Below, piece by piece: positions 44,225-59,657 of a stretch of DNA of 62,604 nucleotides (the stretch's first letter is position 1; each line of letters starts with the position of its first letter). The translations under genes were made by a program, and so were the position numbers. The DNA comes from Obrimoposthia wandeli (taxonomy: Eukaryota). The stretch covers positions 1 through 62,604 of the forward strand of contig CDROCS010004352.1 of assembly GCA_977020255.1 (NCBI GenBank). The letters are read 5' to 3'. The notes beneath the pieces are model-generated. The model saw only the letters and a list, made by a program, of their open reading frames with translations, made no database searches and had not been told where the DNA came from.

Positions 44225-45502
44225 GGTTCTCTCAAAGGGTCTAAAACCTTCAAAAGTGAACCCTCAAGGGTTCAAACCTTCAAAAAAATTATTTTTTCTA
44301 CTTTTCAAAGTTGTATATAATAGGCTTGATCTGACTTTGATTAGACCTTCGACGGTTGACCTTAAAGGGTCCAAAACCTTCAAAAATTTATTTTTTTCCA
44401 AAACGTTTGAAAATTATTTTTTCAAAAATTTTTGTTTAAATTTTCAAAACATTTTGGCGCCAAAATTAAAAAGTTTTTAAATCACTTATACATTATTTTC
44501 ACAAAAAAATTTTGATTTTGACACGTGCAAACAGAATTAAATGTATGTATGTATGTATATGTGAACATATTTGATTACTAGTAGATTAACAAAGACATCA
44601 GATGACATCCCCTGCATGTATGTATGTGTAACTACATCATATCAAAAATTTGTTTTAATGCATCAATTTCAATGCCCGAAAATTCAAATATATGTTTGCT
44701 ATGGTTACAAGTATTTGTGATTTTTGCTACATCAAGATATATTTACTAAAATGTGGACATCACTTCATCTTATCTTCTCATCTAATGTTTTCTAAAGAAA
44801 CTATGTAATCTTAGATGTTAAACTGAAATTAAAAATAGATCAATATTCTACATGTTATTGATTACAGATATTAAATCTCGATTAATATATTGATATTTTA
44901 ATGTACACTGGAATGTCTTCTGATTGTTGGTAGATTGCTTGAGCAGGGAATAGTGAACTTAGACTATATTAATATGTGTGTATGTATGAATACTTACAAA
45001 AATTTACAAGCTGACAGAACAAGAAATAGAGACTATTGGGTGTATGTATGCATGCATGTCTGAATACTTACAAGAAATACAAGGTATATATTAAAATCTA
45101 ATCATAAAACATTCCATCTCTATATTTTTCAATTCCACATCGATATTGTTTATTATAATAACAACTATATGTTCTATATTATGTTCTAAAAGTATTAATG
45201 TTTTGAGGAAATTAATGATATGTTCAGGAAATTTACAATATTTTGATGATTCTAAAGACTAAATTAATGATATGTCCATGAAATCTATGATATTTAGGAC
45301 GTTCTAAGGAAGAAATTATATGAGATTTAGTAATATTGATTAGCATTGCTTGGAAGTTTTCAGTTGATTGAATAAATTTAGGAAACAGTATACATTGATA
45401 GAGTGTGTATAAGAAAAAAAAATGTGTGTGTGTGTATGAATACTTACAAAAATATATGACAAATATACCTAAGTAATATTGTATGTGTGTGTATGTGTGA
45501 AT
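44225..45502 (-). repeat. Family X copy, interrupted at 45502 by a Polinton TIR
   Basis: Very close reverse-complement match to 57940-59400; the match stops exactly where AGTAG begins. Confidence 0.9.
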
Positions 45503-47414: not shown

Positions 47415-50040
47415 TTAAATTCTGAAGTGTCCATAAGCCAGACTAGCGTTCTTTTCTACCCAAAAGCACTTGTCGTCATTACTACTCAAAGCGATTTTGG
47501 TTGATTTATGGGAATACAGTTGATGGGCTCTTGAAATAAATCTAGTTTGCTCAACGCTTTCAATACACCCAGTATCATAAACTTTCCGGTAGGCTTCATG
47601 TGTAAGATTGTTTCTTCCCACACCCTTTGCTCTCATTGAACATGTATTATTAGATGCATGTAAACTGTAGCATTTAGGCCGTAGGAAAATACAATCATCA
47701 TACGAAACCTGTCCCTCGCTTTCATCCTTAAATTTCCCGATAATGTCCTTTAAACTCATAGAGTGTTGAGGATGGTTAGAGGGATATTTATGGGTATCTA
47801 GTAAGTTGTCCCTAAACATTGCTGGTAATAATTGATTATTTAAACTAACATTCCTACATTCTAAAAAGAAAGAGTCAGTGTCCCCAGCTGCGATTTTAAT
47901 CTCACAAAATAATTTTGTCGGTATTTCTCCAATTCTATGTATTGAAGCTCATACATTCTGAGTTTAGAAATGTCTAAAACCGTTTGACCTATATAACTCG
48001 GTCGATCGAGACAAATACTCTGTTTTCCTAATAACACTGCTACCAAGTCATCTGCAATTGTAAAACTACGCTTGAAGTTGTACTTGCTAGTATATGTTAT
48101 TAGTTTACGCTCATCATTGCAAAACCGTAGACAAATACGTTTCCGCAAGTCCTCTACTGTTTTTCCAAAGAGACTATTACTTTTAACTTGTAAAAATCTC
48201 GATCGAATTTGCTAGTGGCCAAATTACGTTTTCTTGAATTCTTCTCAATATAGTCTTTAAACACAAAGTTTTGACTGAAGCTTATAGCACGATGAATTCG
48301 ATTAACTTTCGCTCCCAACTTTAAGTAGAATTGAAGAAGCCGCCAATGCACAACATAATTCAACTTGTCTTCATGGGTTAACAATAATTTCTTAACCTTT
48401 GAATTAGGTAGGCATTGATGAACAGGCGCTACTGGAAGATCATCTAATTTATCATGCATATTGGGAGGGATTTTTATGTCCACCTCAACCAAATAGCCGA
48501 CGTCGGATGAAACTGTATCAACATTAGCCAAATCTGTCATCAACTTATTCAACTGATCCACATCATAAACCCACTTAAAGTTGGCATGAGGTAGAGGTTG
48601 AGTAAGCGCCCACCATACAAATTATTAATATCGATGTACAGAATCTCTGTGGATTGATTTTTGACAACATGATGTTTGTTGACAAAAGTCATTCCACCGC
48701 GTATACCATAATCATACATTTGATACATAGCAGGATCTTGCAGTAACTCGATATTAATTTTAAGAGTTTTTATTGCTGTTGCCCATGAAAGACCAGGTAA
48801 ACTAAAGAAATGCATGGGATCTAGCCCATCTTCTGCTAAAGACTTTACACAAAAGGACTCAAAAACATCAGCTAAAAGATAAATGTCTAACTTCATATAA
48901 TAAAGCATATATTCGAGAAGATTTCGACAATTATTCACCCAAAATGTACGGGCCTCATTATAGTCTTGAAGACTTACACCCTCAAATTCAGTTATGGGTG
49001 GGATTTCAGTTGTATTTTCTAAATCTGCGAAAGTTTTCGCAAATTTATACGGAAAAATCCCCTTATCGTTAACCGAAGCTGGGAACACTGACTGTGTAAT
49101 TGGCCATGCATTTAAAGATGCCGTTAAATTTTAAAGACTGCTCAAAAACTGCAGAGAATCTATGAATCTTAAACTGCAGAATTCAGTTTATGCAGTTAAA
49201 GATAAATATTTCTCTGACGTTTTAGGTATACATGAAATTTCCCAAGAGCTTAATGTACCCAACGCATATTTAAGTATATGATGCAAATCATATCCTTTGA
49301 GGTTATGAAACACGATGGAAATGCGTGGTTTTTTAGGGAGACGACAGCCAAGGTTACAAAGGTTGCACGCCGCTCCCAAGTATCACCCCGTAACATGATC
49401 GTGATCTCTGACTAACTTAGACTGGGTTCCACACAAATAACATAATCTACAAGAATTAAAATTAACCCAGTCTATGCCTGTCATGATCATTGCTTGATGA
49501 GCATTGAGATCATACCACGGTTTGACAATTGTTGTTCCTAATTCCTCTAATTTTAACATAAAATCTAAAACACAATTTGAACCGGAAAAATTTATGATAC
49601 TGGGTAATATTGGGGCCTAAGAATAGTAGTCCTGCCGAAGCCGGTAGGTGAATACCTCATACTGGTCGTGCAATGCTAAAATTGACTCAAAATCTGCATA
49701 CACCCTGAATTCCACGGGTATGCATTTTGCCCAATCCCTGAATTTTAAATCCTTATCCTTAGGCATGCTATATAGCGTATTGTCATCAGGATTCAGTGAA
49801 CATAATGTCAGATGTTTGCTGTAAGAGAGCTCGGATCGGAACCCATGCAAACATCTATGACACCACTTACACCTTATCCTAACCGGTAAGGCTCCATTAT
49901 CTAAATTTAGAAGACGATCTAAACTGGGAATTGCAGCATAGTGTAAATTATTATTATGTTCGAGCAAAATTAAGTTGATCGGTGTCCCCTCATTTTTGCT
50001 CCTATAAATTAAATCTACGAAAGGATTTAATTTTTTTTCT
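47415..50040 (-). pseudogene. pPolB: Polinton pPolB with EndoVII-like insertion; several stops and frameshifts; 5' end cut off by the retrotransposon array
   Basis: CHRCLHGF; VYADFES; CYLC...VRDHDHVTG*YLGAACNLCN; FHNLKGYD; FIDSLQF; KGIFPY; YIDINNLYG; SLFGK; GDTDS; GKFKDE; LRPKCY; RAKG; LAYGH. Confidence 0.96.
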
Positions 50041-50044
50041 CTCA

Positions 50045-50715
50045 GTATTATATTTATTTTATTTATTTATTTATTTATCAAACATTTATTAATGTGAACG
50101 CAATCAATTTCTCAAAGGCCCCATAGGGGCCTCTTCTACTTTACGTAGATCCGGGTCTCAATATGCTGCTGGTCCTCGGTAGCAGTAACAGTAGCTGCTT
50201 GGGGTCTCGGTTTCGTCATTGGAACTTTGAGTAGGTCCGCGTACTTTTTCAGTACTCTTACGTCATCGCCGGGTACAGTTTTGGGCCCCTCGGCAGTCTC
50301 GATTGTAGCGGGGCCACCTTTTCGGCCATTACCCGTAACCGACCGCAGGTCGGTTTTCGGGTACGATTTCTCCTCCTGTCCATGTCGAGATTTCGAACTC
50401 TGACCACCACTATTCAAATCTTCCAACAAATCTGTTCGATTGTTGATAAAAGGTCTCTTTCCGGCATACGAATCTGCTGCTTCCTCTAGACTAATGTTGT
50501 TCTTTGCTATTACAAATTTGTCGATAATACCAGACAGTATCTTTGCGCACTCCTCGTTGACATCATAGTTTCGCAGTAACCCAAAAATATCGTCTTGGGC
50601 CCCCTGCAGGAGATTATAATTACTCCCGTTGTTTACCTGCGCTTCATTATTTCTCTTCCTGACCATGTCGAAGTTTTCAGATCTTATTATTTTTATTCAG
50701 ATATTAATAAACAAT
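50045..50715 (-). mobile_element. Internally deleted derivative of the NeSL-like element (176-aa in-frame fusion ORF 50136-50666, 3' hairpin, (TAAA)n tail)
   Basis: KVPMTKPRPQAATVTATEDQQ matches the repeat linker at ~54280-54340; the end IETRIYVK* is homologous to IEAWNYVK* of the RT ORF; AGGCCCC-TAT-GGGGCCT hairpin. Confidence 0.75.
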
Positions 50716-50848
50716 TTTTTTTTTTTTTTTGGATTATTGAAAAAAGGCTCATTTTCGGCACACGAATCTGATGTTGTTTGTTGGTTGTTGGTTGTTGGTT
50801 ATTGGTTGTTGGTTGTTATTGTTGGTTGTTATTGTTGTTGTTTTTTTT

Positions 50849-53800
50849 TTATTTTACGTAGTTCCAGGCCTCAATCTTCTCCAGCTCCTCGGCTGACAAC
50901 TTATCCAGGATCCCAGTTGTATGACTCGAGAATTTAGCCCACGAGGCCGCTGTATGTTCGATGGTTTTCAGGGTTAGTCGGATCTTGATATCCTTGATCT
51001 CCTTTGCTTTAAAACCAGCATTTGCAAAGATCCGGTTATTGATTTCAGGCCAGAAGCGCGTAGAGTTGCACGAGTTTTTCTGGGTGGCGGGTCTTTAGCA
51101 TTTCAACGAGCTCCGCGTATTTGGACATAGTTTCGGTGAGCCTCAGATCAAATGACATGTCAGAGTCAAACGGGATCTTGATCTCTATCAGCATCACCTT
51201 ATAGTCAGTCTCGATCGTTATGTCTGGTCGTGGTCTGCAGCTGTTTCCGTTATCGTCTACACATAAGTGGGTCAGCTCTTGAGTTACCTGTCCTGGATAT
51301 TTTAGTTCCATGACCATTGCAGTTTCCCGGCAGATCATGTCGTGTCTTTGAATTCGTAGTTTTGCTATGAGCTTACAACCAACGATTGCATGGCTCATCG
51401 ACTCTCGCTCCTGGCATCCCTTCCTGCATGGGGCGATCATATCAGTCCTGGGGCCTCGTACCTTCATGCGCCCGCACCTTGCGCGGTGGATGAAGAACCA
51501 CCCTCGGTACGTCAGACGGCCCTTCATGATGGCCCGGTTAATGTCTGTGTCTGATGTGGCGTTCTTATATATTGGACTCGCTAGCTTGTCTTCGAGAACC
51601 TTGTGACTCTGGCTGAGTTGCACAATGTTATGCATCGCCTTACTTGTGGCCTTGTAGGTCTTGAACTGCATGAGAAAACTGCCTCCATGGTCACTGAGTT
51701 ATGAAAAAGATTGTGGGCTTGGTTCTTCTCAATCAGTTCTAGTTTGATATTTAGCTCATTCTGGAATTTGTTGGCCGCGTGGAACAGCCGCGTCCAAAGT
51801 CCCGTATCTTTCATGTTAGTGGCTAGGGTCCCTTCATTAAACCCCTGAACTGCTTCGGAGAAGGTCATTGGCGGATTAGGAAACTTCAATTGTTCGGTGA
51901 GCTCACGCCTAAATAGGTTCTTCAGGTCCCTGTCGCGTGCATTTGCCATCTTTATCGTCTGGATGATGGACTGATGTTATATTCGTCCTCAATCCTTGTC
52001 AGCCCAAGACCTCCACGGTCCTTGTGCCCATAGAGAACTCCGATAGGGCTGTTTGCTAAGTCTAGTCCCGCGATTGGTTTTATGACTTTCCTTAGGAGTC
52101 CTTCAAAGCCCCTTTTCGTCTATTCGGTTGCAGGATAAGCGGAGTGTACCAGGTTTCCCTGTCTGAATACAAATATCAGCTTTGAGTGAATGAAGGTATT
52201 GTATGCGTCAGTCTTTTGATACGGTCTTAGTTCGCTTTTTGCCACTGCCGTGGTCAGTCGAAGCACCTCAGCCAACAGCTCCTCGCAATGTTGCTTGGCG
52301 TTTGCAGTCTTTTCGCTGCCATGGTATCGGTATGGCATGTCCGCAGTTACCTCTGGTATTTTTTCTCCTCTCAGCATGATATTGTCAGCTAGTTTGTCTT
52401 TCCTGTAAGGTATTCAGGACAATCTGGGCCGAATGGCAGCTGTAGCTCGCAGTCTTGTCTGGTATTGATCGGTCCTTCTTGAGCTTTGCTTCATGCCAGG
52501 GTCCGGATTTCACCTGTTTCAAATCTGTATCCTGAGCCATGGCTTTGGTTTGTGGCCTCTATTACCGGATTGATGCTCATATTAAATAAGAGCATCGATA
52601 GTGGACACCCTTGTCGCACTCCTCGTTTTATTGGGATCCGGTTGATTTTCCTGTCACCGCAAACAATGTTGGTCATATTCTGCTTATATACATCTTCAAG
52701 CAGTCTGATAGCGGCTGGGGCCACGTTAATTTTTTCCAGCATTCCCCAAATGAAGGAGACTGGCACCGACCCAAAGGCATCGGCCAGATCTAGGAAGGCG
52801 ATGTAGGCGCAGCCTTGGTTCCTCTTTCGCAATACTTCCGAGGTGATCAGGCTAATCACCGTGTTGTGCTCATAGCACCCCTCGTAGGCACCAAGGGATT
52901 TTTGTCGTGGATACAGTATTATATTCTTCCAGGCCCAATCACTCATCCGTATTGTGATGATTGACGCAAATATCTTGTAAACGCATGACATGACTGCGAT
53001 AGGTCGCCAAGCTGTGATGTCATCGTAGCGCTGTTTCCTAGGTTTTGGGATGAACTTGGTCTTGAAGGTTCGCCAAGAGTCGGGAGTCCGTTGTTCGTCA
53101 ATGCATGCATTGTATAGGCCTGCCAGTTTGTTACCATTATCGAAGCTGTGTAACATGTCCCTATATGTTACTTGGTCCGGTCCTGGGGCACTACCAGGTG
53201 CTGCTCTCAGCGCTCGAGTCACCTCCTCTGGAGTGATGTGGCTGATCTCGAAGGTCTCTGGTGCTTTTCGGAAAAGGTTATCGGGAACTGCATCCCAGTC
53301 AATTGGGGTTGGTTCAGCGCTCTTGCTTGTAAAGAAACCCCGTATGTTGTCCTCGTTTGGGCATGCTGTTGTCTCGTCGATAGCGATCTCCGTGATTTGG
53401 TCAAATGCTGCTTTTTTTGAGAAGGCGTATAGCTTGTTAATTACAATATTCTCCTTGTTCTTGCCGTGGTTCCTTGGCTTGAAACAAGGGCTTGATCACA
53501 ATCCAGTTTCTCAGTAGGCAGGCTGTGGTCACAGCCTTTCTATTGCGTTCACGTCCTTTCTTTCCTGCCGGGGGTTATTGCTCAGCACAATGGCCAAGGG
53601 TTCAGATATATCACCCTCCCCATTTCCCGGCGATGCTGAGCAACTCAGTTTCCCGACTTGGAAAGCTGAGGCTGATATATTGTTCTCCAATTCTGTCTTA
53701 TTCTTGTTGTGTGATCTCAGCTGTCTTTCATTTTGGCCTTCCCTACCTGGAATCATGTTCGGTTCACCTGAGGTCGATGCAGTAGGATCTGCATTTAGAT

Positions 53801-54799
53801 CAGTTATTGCTTCGGTCTCTTTGAGGATTGTCGCCTCTGGGATTGTCTTCTCAGCGATTGTCATTTCACTCTCCGTTACGTTGGGTACAACGTCATCCTG
53901 GTTACTGATGTGTCCTGTATTGACAGGGTTTGGGTCCGCTATCTGCGGCATCTTACCTTCAAAGAATTTCTTCTCGGTTTCTGCTGCACTGTTTCGTATG
54001 CCAAACTTTATTTTTTTGTCTGTGGAGAACCACTTTTTGAGCTCGTCCGATTTTTCAATGAAGCCACCATTTTGGCCCATAATGTTAGTTACATTCGCAG
54101 TTCCGTCTTCTCGTCTCTGTACGTTTGCTTTGATGAAAGTGCCACTGATTAGAAAGGGAGAGGTGCCTTTTTTGTTTCCGCTGAGTATGTGCCGTTGTAG
54201 GAGCTTGACTTTAGTTTGTTTGTTATCCATGGCATATCCATATCCTTGGTTGCGTTGGTAGAAGAGCACGTATAGTTGCTGCTGGTCCTCGGTATCAGTA
54301 ACAGTAGCTGCTTGGGGTCTCGGTTTCGTCATTGGAACTTTGATTGTCTCCTCAGTGATTGTCGTTCCTCTCTCTGTTACGTTGGGTACAACGTCATCCT
54401 GGTTACTGATGTGTCCTGTATTGACAGGGTTTGGGTCCGCTATCTGCGGCATCTTACCTTCAAAGAATTTCTTCTCGGTTTCTGCTGCACTGTTTCGTAT
54501 GCCAAACTTTATTTTTTTGTCTGTGGAGAACCACTTTTTGAGCTCGTCCGATTTTTCAATGAAGCCACCATTTTGGCCCATAATGTTAGTGGCATTCGCA
54601 GTTCCGTCTTCTCGTCTCTGTACGTTTGCTTTGATGAAAGTGCCACTGATTAGAAAGGGAGAGGTGCCTTTTTTGTTTCCGCTGAGTATGTGCCGTTGTA
54701 GGAGCTTGACTTTAGTTTGTCTGTTATCCATGGCATATCCATATCCTTGGTTGCGTTGGTAGAAAAGCACGTATAGTTGCTGCTGGTTCTCGGTAGCAG
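50849..54799 (-). mobile_element. NeSL/Utopia-like non-LTR retrotransposon (RT, CCHC, RLE endonuclease), decayed; 5' part runs into the gap
   Basis: SAPGPD, WRPIAV...YKIF, GCYEHN, AFLDLADAFGSVP, GVRQGCPLSMLLF, GGLG, CRKGC...ESMSHAIVGC, RHD, PDI...IEIK...KY; YADD segment missing; frameshifts present. Confidence 0.92.
53873..54799 (-). repeat. In-frame 501-bp (167-aa) tandem repeat in the retrotransposon N-terminal ORF
   Basis: Matching positions 54276/54777 and 53910/54411; only a handful of substitutions between units. Confidence 0.95.
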
Positions 54800-54974
54800 N
54801 NNNNNNNNNNNNNNNNNNNNNNNNNNNNNNNNNNNNNNNNNNNNNNNNNNNNNNNNNNNNNNNNNNNNNNNNNNNNNNNNNNNNNNNNNNNNNNNNNNNN
54901 NNNNNNNNNNNNNNNNNNNNNNNNNNNNNNNNNNNNNNNNNNNNNNNNNNNNNNNNNNNNNNNNNNNNNNNNNN

Positions 54975-55055
54975 GTACATCGCCAAGCTAGTCTGTGACC
55001 TATATGAGAACGAGATATCCGTACATCTGTGATCAATGTCGGTCCCGAGCCCTTG
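54975..55055 (-). repeat. Inverted copy of the 46-bp minisatellite and its flank
   Basis: Reverse complement aagggctcgggaccgacattgatcacagatgtacggat... matches 45557-45630. Confidence 0.9.
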
Positions 55056-55207
55056 AATTTAAAATTTTGAATTTGGCGCCAAAAATAAATTTTGAATTTG
55101 GCGCCAAAAATAAATTTTTAAAAGCGCAAAAAATGATGCATTTAAACAAAAGAATGGAATGACCTTGGAATTACCTGGCGTACTCGGGAGAATTGGTTGT
55201 GGATAAA

Positions 55208-55312
55208 GGTTAGGGTTAGGGTATGGCTTAGGGTTAGGGCTATGGCTAGGGTTAGGGTTATCGTATGGCTCAGGGTTAGGGTTAGGGATATGGGCGTGGT
55301 TAGGGTTAGGGT
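55208..55312 (+). repeat. Interstitial telomere-like TTAGGG array with TATGGC-type spacers
   Basis: ttagggttagggtatggcttagggttagggctatggctagggttaggg... Confidence 0.9.
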
Positions 55313-55489
55313 ACTTTATAATTTGAGTTTCATTATGTCTTATTCATATATCCTTATATAGAACTCACATGAGATATAAACAAAATCAGTAATAATAACA
55401 TGCATTCATGAATACAACCAAACAAATCCTCAACCAATCATGTGAGGTTAGATAGAATATAAACAATTCAGACATTATTTCTGATCACA

Positions 55490-57829: not shown

Positions 57830-59657
57830 ACAAACTTGTATTTCTTGGAAGTATTCAGACACATATGCACACACATACCCAATGGTCTCTATGTTCTATT
57901 TTCCTTGTTCTCTCAACTTGTAAAATTTTGTAAGTATTCACACATACAATATTACTTAGGTATATTTGTCATATATTTTTGTAAGTATTCATACACACAC
58001 ACACACATATATATACACACAGACATATAATATTACTATAGTCAATTTTCTTATACACACTCTATCAATGTATACTGTTCTCTAAATTTATTCAATCAAC
58101 TGAAAACTTCCAAGCAATGCTAATCAATATTACTAAATCTCATATAATTTCTTCCTTAGAACGTTCTAAATATCATAGATTTCATGGACATATCATTAAT
58201 TTAGTCTTTAGAATCATCAAAATATTGTAAATTTCCTGAACATATCATTAATTTCCTCAAAACATTAATACTTTTAGAACATAATATAGAACATATAGTT
58301 GTTATTATAATAAACAATATCGATGTGGAATTGAAAAAGATAGAGATGGAATGTTTTATGATTAGATTTTAGTATATACCTTGTATTTCTTGTAAGTATT
58401 CAGACATGCATGCATACATACACCCAATAGTCTCTATTTCTTGTTCTGTCAGCTTGTACATTTTTGTAAGTATTCATACATACACACATATTAATATAGT
58501 CTAAGTTCACTATTCCCTGCTCAAGCAATCTACCAACAATCAGAAGACATTCCAGTGTACATTAGAAATATCAATATATAAGTTGAGATTTAATATATGT
58601 AATCAATAACATGTAGAATATTGATCTATTTTTAATTTCAGTTTAACATCTAAGATTAAATAGTTTCTTTAGAAAACATTAGATGAGAAGATAAGAAGAA
58701 GAGATAAGATGAAGTGATGTCCACATTTTAGTAAATATATCTTGATGTAGCAAAAATCACAAATACTTGTAACCATAGCAAACATATATTTGAATTTTCG
58801 GGCATTGAAATTGATGCATTAAAACAAATTTTTGATATGATGTAGTTACACATACATACATGCAGGGGATGTCATCTGATGTCTTTGTTAATCTACTAGT
58901 AATCAAATATGTTCACATATACATACATACATACATTTAATTCTGTTTGCACGTGTCAACATCTGTCTAATTATTCACACACACACATGTATGAGTGATG
59001 TAAGCAAATGAAAAACATATAAGATGGAATTTACATAGCTTAATTTAGGTAAATAAATTTTGTAAATTTTTATTACTTTGTTTTAAAAGTAATTGATTTT
59101 GAAGTAATAAAGTTTTGAAGAAAATAAATTTTTGAAGCAAAGATGTTTTTGAAGAAAATAAGTTTTGATGAAAAAATTTCAGAGGCAAAAATTTTCATGT
59201 ACAAATTTTTTTTGTTGTGAAAATGATGTATAAGTGATTTAAAAACTTTTTAATTTTGGCGCCAAAATGTTTTGAAAATTTAAACAAAAATTTTTGAAAA
59301 AATAATTTTTAAACGTTTTGGAAAAAATAAATTTTTGAAGGTTTTGGACCCTTGAAGGTCAACCCTTGAAGGTCTGAGTAAGTTCTGATCAAGCCTATTA
59401 TATATAACATTAAAAAGTAGAAAAATACATTTTAGAAGGTTTTGAACCCTTTAAGGTCAACCCTCGAAGGTCTAATGAAAGTCAGATCAATGCTATTATA
59501 TATAACTTTGAAAAGTAGAAAAATAATTTTTTTAAGGTTTTGAACCCTTTAAGGTCAACCCTCGAAGGTCTAATCAAAGTCAGATCAATGCTATTATATA
59601 TAACTTTGAAAAGTAGAAAAATAAATTTTTGAAGGTTTTGAACCCTTTAAGGTCAAC
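57830..59657 (+). repeat. Family X copy with 98-bp subterminal tandem units
   Basis: aaggtcaac at 59355, 59453, 59551 and 59649; reverse complement of 44225-45495. Confidence 0.9.

Follow-up and report, generated by a model that had tools for sequence, protein, structure and literature searches.

A tandemly repeated orphan module in ORF1 of an abundant NeSL-like non-LTR retrotransposon of Obrimoposthia wandeli

The contig CDROCS010004352.1 of the Obrimoposthia wandeli assembly GCA_977020255.1 (62,604 nucleotides, analysed over its whole length and called the window here) carries on its minus strand a damaged retrotransposon without long terminal repeats (a non-LTR retrotransposon) of the restriction-like endonuclease (RLE) type, in which a unit of 167 codons is repeated in tandem upstream of the reverse transcriptase (RT). 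Our results indicate that this repeat is probably the central module of the first of two open reading frames (ORF1 and ORF2) of a young, abundant, NeSL-like element, in which the modules would bind nucleic acid, ORF2 would be reached by a -1 frameshift, and units would be gained by recombination or slippage. An earlier reading of the sequence alone had seen in the module a likeness to the cold-shock domain (CSD). That identity was not established: Pfam, the PDB, language-model searches and a genome-wide search with a CSD hidden Markov model (HMM) were all negative, and profile comparison was marginal.

The repeat itself, announced in that reading as at least two in-frame units of 167 amino acids ahead of the RT, was borne out. 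A repeat search of the window detected a direct repeat on the minus strand with a start-to-start distance of 501 nt (53841-54140 versus 54342-54641, 97% identity), which BLAST widened to 53841-54298 versus 54342-54799 at 97.4% identity. The period corresponds to 167 codons, and both units share one open frame, 53529-54986(-), which enters an assembly gap. The core string quoted in the earlier reading was recovered in the translation of 53799-54299(-), and stops are present in the other five frames of every unit examined. Tandem Repeats Finder, run with a longest period of 500, did not report the 501-bp repeat because its period lies above that limit. The antisense of the units is open for 140-227 codons at 53578-54261(+) and 54340-54762(+), one of the reverse frames containing just a single stop in each unit; we judged these frames to be a by-product of composition. 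The repeat region contains the following features:

54342-54799, minus strand: upstream unit of 167 codons, which the N gap truncates at about codon 154
53841-54341, minus strand: downstream (last) 167-codon unit, with the 125-aa basic core at about 53910-54284 and then the acidic linker
54800-54974, no strand: assembly gap (N), covering the 5' part of ORF1, so that the unit count of the window copy is unreadable

The unit adjoining the gap, 54342-54799, bears the residues that are diagnostic of a first unit (..ATEN/QQQ.., DNRQT, ..ERGTTITEETIKV), so that the element in the window probably has two units.

The module occurs throughout a large family. Loci were sampled by best score from the host assembly (1.35 Gb, with TTAGGG-type repeats and many Polintons), so that the counts given here are not a census. 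A six-frame genome search with one unit yielded 2034 candidates, and all 150 that were scored were 84-100% identical. The N-terminal part of ORF1 yielded 3879 candidates and the C-terminus of ORF2 yielded 4287, and at least 20 among the best 150 of the latter have open ORF2 frames of 973-984 aa. The family is young and very abundant, and it was active recently. Intact copies consist of a 5' untranslated region (UTR) of 16 nt (ATCTGAAAACTTCGAC), an ORF1 in which about 165 N-terminal residues precede n modules and a tail, and an ORF2 of 973 aa; examples are an ORF1 of 717 aa with three units (L034), an ORF1 of 378 aa with one unit (L012), and an ORF2 of 973 aa (L032). The linker that closes the N-terminal part of ORF1 (..KVPMTKPRPQAATVT..) matches the linker between units, as a 79%-identical repeat (D2). 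The units do lie upstream of the RT, as the sequence-only reading held, but they are not in the RT reading frame at the N-terminus of the RT protein, since intact copies place them in a separate ORF1. The window copy resembles a single ORF because a 2-nt deletion at about 53659 joins the ORF1 frame to that of ORF2.

The number of units varies between copies. Among the sampled loci, full-length ORF1s have one unit at eight loci, two units at four (C2157, C4894, C4033 and C288, with open ORF1s of 555-565 aa) and three units at one (C1901). Longer arrays were found at C1161, with at least six units, and at C2294, where at least 24 units run uninterrupted over about 12 kb (210500-222500; L031:1-10000, L032:1-2000) ahead of an intact ORF2 of 973 aa; this array is partly frameshifted, with one stretch open for 1601 aa. 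At the two-unit loci, at the three-unit locus and in the window, the first unit reads TATEN/DNRQT and the last unit TDTED/DNKQT, and both read ANV. Because these unit-specific residues recur in all of these copies, the duplicated form must have been inherited through retrotransposition and is no local accident. A local capture or an assembly duplication, which the sequence-only reading had itself named as what would refute it, was removed by the presence of the module in thousands of copies and by the same two-unit structure at four other loci.

The assignment of the element to the RLE-type non-LTR retrotransposons, also made from the sequence alone, is supported by several features. ORF2 of an intact copy matches RVT_1 with an E value of 1.2e-28, and its relatives are non-LTR RTs. 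The C-terminal motifs C-x3-C-x..H-x4-C and RPD-x11-E-I-K are visible in the intact ORF2 and in the window (51045-51671), the endonuclease region matches weakly the PD-(D/E)xK family L_protein_N, and a Pfam scan of the intact copy gave no match to an apurinic/apyrimidinic endonuclease (APE) domain (PF03372/PF14529). Pfam detected none of the zinc fingers, Myb domains or Ulp1 proteases that usually stand at the N-termini of R2 and NeSL elements. The closest relative of ORF2, P0002 (E value 2e-110, 30% identity over 88% of the query), carries an N-terminal Ulp1 protease, and proteins named R2 matched only at E values of about 1e-25. An N-terminal Ulp1 protease is a hallmark of NeSL (PMC4640811), and we therefore describe the RT as NeSL-like, the Ulp1 of the best relative being the sole support for this placement.

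The layout of the two frames suggests how ORF2 could be expressed. ORF2 lies in the -1 frame relative to ORF1, with an overlap of about 50 nt, and no ATG occurs in its first 190 codons or so. Within the overlap, the zero-frame sequence GCU_UUC_CCG contains the heptamer U_UUC_CCG, whose 25-nt context is exact in 34 loci, and a hairpin of -42.2 kcal/mol (z -2.5; L032:2128-2240(+), window 53560-53666(-)) follows downstream. We infer that ORF2 is made as an ORF1-ORF2 fusion by gag-pol-like -1 ribosomal frameshifting at this heptamer, before the strong hairpin. In such a fusion the modules would lie N-terminal to the RT, in the position of the zinc fingers and Myb domains of R2 and NeSL proteins.

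Copies of the family share a target site in the gene for the protein-primed DNA polymerase B (pPolB) of Polintons. In the window, a partner sequence X (50056-50686(-)) starts at 50686, directly after the 3' end of the main copy (..GAATAAAAATAATAA). It keeps codons 1-170 of ORF1 and then passes to the nine codons that close ORF2 (HIETRIYVK versus KIEAWNYVK, each followed by a stop); a short 3' UTR comes next, with a tail of (AAATA)n/(AAT)n. This make-up is that of an internally deleted copy of the element. An open frame of the X type, of 186 codons, is present in more than 100 of the best 150 N-terminal matches among the 3879 candidates. In 19 loci X adjoins pPolB at the same nucleotide, so that the 3' junction is constant. 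An uninterrupted (empty) pPolB site, in which ..AATGTATT runs directly into CAAATATAATACTGA.., was found at L033:3585-3705, and L061 (431-550, 2010-2150) retains both target flanks with a 3-nt overlap. Five loci have five different 5' junctions, with a target loss of 0-43 bp or a 5' truncation, and full-length copies at the pPolB site have lost 9 or 24 bp of the target. The insertion is in the sense orientation of pPolB. Most occupied pPolB sites hold a 5'-truncated or full copy head-to-tail with X; other copies lie elsewhere in pPolB or outside it, and specificity is not absolute. The combination of fixed 3' and ragged 5' junctions is the R2-like signature of site-specific, target-primed insertion, and new copies usually land between the upstream half of the target and an existing X, giving head-to-tail pairs. 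Two other interpretations were given up. Capture of the N-terminal part from pPolB, or a single chimeric mobile unit 'X-polB', was dropped as X ends with the last ORF2 codons and L033 is an empty target; a lack of site specificity, considered because the 5' flanks all differ, was revised after the empty site had been found and the junctions compared.

The core of the module evolves under purifying selection. Comparing an older one-unit subfamily with the main subfamily, pN/pS (the ratio of nonsynonymous to synonymous changes per site) was 0.35 for the 123-codon core and 0.26 for the RT; for the same two subfamilies it was 0.69 for the N-terminal part of ORF1, 0.65 for the part of ORF2 preceding the RT, and 2.8 for linker plus tail. 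In 70 distinct core DNAs, variability at third codon positions was 1.45 times that at first and second positions; nucleotide diversity at the three codon positions was 0.038/0.0375/0.055. Core variants present in at least five copies had a nonsynonymous-to-synonymous ratio of about 0.55, and singletons were near neutral. The core has an isoelectric point (pI) of 9.8-9.9 and 13-14 aromatic residues in 125; aromatics are absent from the acidic linker (about 42 aa, pI 4.4). The evidence of selection is moderate, and it fits a folded, constrained core with a free linker between cores. A phmmer search with one unit against 1.84 billion protein representatives found no true homologue; its single match, an unrelated protein of 70-aa repeats summing seven weak stretches, was rejected. 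A word-index search with the N-terminal part of ORF1 found no match, and Pfam identified no family in ORF1, its N-terminal part, the core or the tail, giving only noise below the cut-off (Hydrolase_3, DUF3715). Within the reach of these searches, the core is a lineage-restricted orphan domain. As no homologues from other species were found, there is no deep alignment and, therefore, no confident structure model.

The proposed likeness to cold-shock proteins rested on an alignment by eye. Of the two motifs, the RNP1-like string that had been read as QGYGYA is invariant (Q-G-Y-G-Y-A in 30 units); the position of RNP2, already called degenerate in that reading, has K-L-L-Q-R-H, without an aromatic residue, and the module contains no RNP2 of the VFVH type. 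On this explanation the N-terminal 70 residues of the core would be a diverged CSD, that is, a five-strand oligonucleotide-binding (OB) barrel with GYGY in its RNP1-like strand, acting as a chaperone of RNA or single-stranded DNA or in target recognition. We consider it unlikely. In its favour, a CSD profile built of 20 sequences from the CSD genes of the same genome was aligned by hhalign over the full domain (unit 11-74 versus CSD 5-64 of 65), reproducing the register chosen by eye, with scores of 17.5 (P 0.016, alignment A1) and 19.1 (P 0.0055, A3) that 3 of 200 and 1 of 200 column shuffles reached; the statistical support is marginal, however, with an hhalign probability of 3-7%, and a P of about 0.01 is only suggestive because the test was post hoc on a likeness picked by eye. 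Our own CSD HMM gave the unit 6.7 bits, matched by 11 of 2000 shuffles, with a signal from the first hairpin alone. A first AlphaFold2 run (167 aa, 30 near-identical copies; predicted local distance difference test, pLDDT, 31) placed strands at 8-14, 18-24, 31-38 and 55-59, where strands 1-4 of a CSD would fall; the beta-rich half of the core is basic (pI 10.3), and a second stretch, KWF..KFGIRN (unit 88-107), is also like CSD strands 1-2.

Against this, a second run with 30 near-identical copies of the 130-aa core (pLDDT 50, predicted TM score 0.45) gave E6-16, E19-25, H29-40, E54-62, E68-75, H84-93 and H105-113, a beta-beta-alpha-beta-beta-alpha-alpha order with no five-strand barrel and with helix 29-40 in the place of CSD strand 3, which holds RNP2. 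Foldseek listed CSD chains only as rows at noise level (E 0.8-1.2, TM score at most 0.39). No CSD was found in a Pfam scan of ORF1 pieces even at E values up to 10; sequence and profile searches of the PDB with the unit gave no match; and two language-model searches (ESM Atlas features) returned no CSD, hypothetical phage proteins and T4 RegA scoring at most 0.85, at noise level. The CSD HMM PF00313, run over the whole genome in six frames, matched at 120 sites but in none of the thousands of units; most of these sites are Csp genes of bacterial type on bacterial-looking contigs, with Y-box genes in addition. What the module has in common with CspA, Y-box proteins and Lin28 is an aromatic strand (GYGY) that follows a hydrophobic one, together with a basic surface and a full-length profile alignment of marginal score; it differs in having no significant profile, HMM, structural or language-model match and in the roughly 55 extra residues with two predicted helices that follow. 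A full-text literature search found no paper linking CSDs with the ORF1 architecture of long interspersed nuclear elements (LINEs). An OB or cold-shock fold would be the first of its kind in a LINE ORF1, which is improbable on present evidence. About 100 bacterial-type cold-shock genes with open frames of 66-97 codons lie on contigs such as C4085, C5499, C1827 and C253, the last having, at 4.68 Mb, the size of a bacterial chromosome; the assembly therefore includes bacterial (symbiont or contaminant) sequence.

In our preferred explanation, each ORF1 module comprises a basic, aromatic-rich core of about 125 aa and an acidic linker of about 42 aa, and the core may bind nucleic acid. Its ligand might be the element's own RNA, as with other ORF1 proteins. 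In the frameshift fusion it might alternatively be target DNA, because the module would there hold the place of the zinc fingers and Myb domains of R2 and NeSL proteins. The number of modules would change through unequal recombination or template slippage between the 501-bp units. One-, two- and three-unit forms are all passed on by retrotransposition, so that extra modules seem to be tolerated, and the long arrays may be local, satellite-like expansions. A bolder version, to which we give little credence, is that the core represents a new kind of nucleic-acid-binding domain, perhaps a cold-shock or OB fold that has diverged extremely far, which replaces zinc fingers and Myb, is frameshift-fused N-terminal to the RT, coats RNA and guides insertion into Polinton pPolB, with a copy number of one to three tuning activity.

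Several points weigh against the preferred explanation. Nucleic-acid binding by the core is a presumption; the AlphaFold2 models of the module stand at pLDDT 31 and 50, and all fold searches fell below noise. The A-site codon of the heptamer, CCC, is a non-canonical slippery codon in eukaryotes. The selection test compares two subfamilies of a young family in non-independent pairs, and a search for RNA-seq runs that could show expression returned none. Single-unit copies are the commonest in a small and biased sample, and multi-unit copies may be tolerated rather than advantageous.

Other explanations of the module and of its repetition have to be set beside this one. The core might be a non-canonical RNA-recognition motif (RRM) or another ferredoxin-like alpha+beta domain, of the kind that most known ORF1 proteins have once or twice, with GYGYAM as the RNP1-like strand; we regard this as doubtful. 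Pfam found no RRM, coiled coil, CCHC knuckle or SGNH esterase in the N-terminal part, core or tail of ORF1, and the RRM control of the profile comparison, a single consensus sequence, is rough only. A different kind of account locates selection at the DNA level, the 501-bp units having been multiplied as promoter or enhancer monomers like the 5' monomers of mouse L1, with the protein repeat as a by-product. The 5' UTR is only 16 nt, so that the promoter must be internal or borrowed, and unit number ranges from 1 to at least 24; promoter strength in mouse L1 scales with monomer number. However, the core is constrained at the protein level (as seen in its pN/pS and in third positions being the most variable), the unit length is a multiple of three, one array has an open frame of 1601 aa, and most full-length copies sampled are single-unit. 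We hold promoter selection to be rather improbable as the explanation, although it does not exclude protein function and is compatible with it. It is very improbable indeed that the duplication is meaningless, either as an assembly artefact at a contig end or as neutral, satellite-like expansion of a dead copy. The window copy adjoins a gap and is itself broken, and the long arrays at C2294 are frameshifted; yet the two-unit structure recurs with the same diagnostic residues at four other loci with open ORF1s, and the three-unit ORF1 is open over its 717 aa.

The element was compared with several known systems. Kojima and Jurka placed the planarian R5/LIN families within the NeSL clade; in Utopia/NeSL families there is generally a single protein, which bears zinc fingers at its N-terminus and may or may not include Ulp1 (PMC4640811). 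With this clade (NeSL-1, Utopia, planarian R5/LIN) the present element shares an RT followed by CCHC and a PD-(D/E)xK endonuclease, the lack of an APE domain, and insertion at a specific target, exact at the 3' junction and ragged at the 5' junctions; it differs in its two overlapping ORFs, in having no detected zinc finger, Myb or Ulp1, and in an orphan module of variable copy number. Like R2, it has an RLE-type enzyme and inserts site-specifically, with 5' junctions that vary and with tandems arranged head to tail; the RT of R2 performs end-to-end template jumping. R2 has a single ORF with N-terminal zinc fingers and Myb, inserts into 28S rDNA and carries a 5' ribozyme that processes it, whereas the present element has two ORFs and another target, and an Rfam search at its 5' end found no ribozyme. 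Mouse L1 elements carry a variable number of tandem 5' monomers within one family, as non-coding promoter units of about 200 bp in the 5' UTR. The two are alike in that tandem units at the 5' end of a LINE differ in number between members of one family; the present unit, in contrast, is 501 bp long, coding and constrained at the protein level. The known classes of ORF1 (LINE-1-like, Jockey-like, esterase) use RRM, coiled-coil, CCHC or esterase domains, and known ORF1 proteins bear 'one or two' RNA-binding domains (PMC3905857). Like the ORF1 proteins of APE-type LINEs, the present ORF1 is a separate upstream frame whose product, a basic protein of several domains, presumably coats or chaperones the RNA of the element; unlike them, it consists of an orphan domain, its module number is polymorphic within one family, and ORF2 overlaps it in the -1 frame.

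What is probably new here is an NeSL-like, Polinton-targeting element with two ORFs, likely expressed by frameshifting, whose ORF1 is built of an orphan basic module in polymorphic copy number. R2-like RLE LINEs are studied as programmable gene-insertion tools, and their known target and RNA binding rests on zinc-finger and Myb modules. In the present case, a high-copy RLE family without a detected zinc finger or Myb carries instead a conserved orphan domain in a separate, probably frameshift-fused ORF, and the family can be seen as a natural experiment on how RLE-type enzymes are re-equipped. The polymorphism of one, two or three modules within the family permits a direct test of module dosage on retrotransposition. 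A fixed target inside a virus-like Polinton would make the family a mobile element that parasitises another.

Besides the repeat region, the retrotransposon and its insertion site in the window comprise the following features:

53667-53840, minus strand: ORF1 tail past the last unit, low complexity and fast evolving
53652-53666, minus strand: ORF1/ORF2 overlap, a remnant of the -1 frameshift heptamer context GCTTTCCCGAAGTCGGG, with 2 nt missing in the window copy
51045-53651, minus strand: ORF2, broken, with a stop at 53529 and further frame changes including breaks in the RT
52491-53222, minus strand: RT domain, RVT_1, E value 2.8e-17
51045-51671, minus strand: CCHC motif and RPD...ExK restriction-like endonuclease (PD-(D/E)xK), motifs visible in the ORF
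50687-51044, minus strand: 3' UTR, with an A-rich stretch, a (CCAACAA)n microsatellite at 50772-50842 and about 85 nt ending ...GAATAAAAATAATAA
50056-50686, minus strand: head-to-tail partner X, the internally deleted copy, with an exact 5' end (ATCTGAAAACTTCGAC+ATG)
47415-50055, minus strand: Polinton pPolB gene, downstream of the insertion site, with the target flank ..AAATATAATACTGA.. and a DNA_pol_B_2 match

The length of the (CCAACAA)n microsatellite in the 3' UTR differs between copies, from about 70 to more than 330 nt (window 50772-50842(-), L036-L064). Past the N gap, the window holds a 25-bp tandem repeat (55062-55134) and a degenerate TTAGGG-like array (55208-55313). The upstream flank of pPolB is absent from the sequence just past the gap, so that the element may not continue directly into what lies on the far side. 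An inverted repeat of about 1.1 kb (44266-45417 and 58046-59451, 97% over 900 bp) encloses the pPolB, protease and jelly-roll capsid genes together with the retrotransposon, and its two arms probably represent the host Polinton's terminal inverted repeats.

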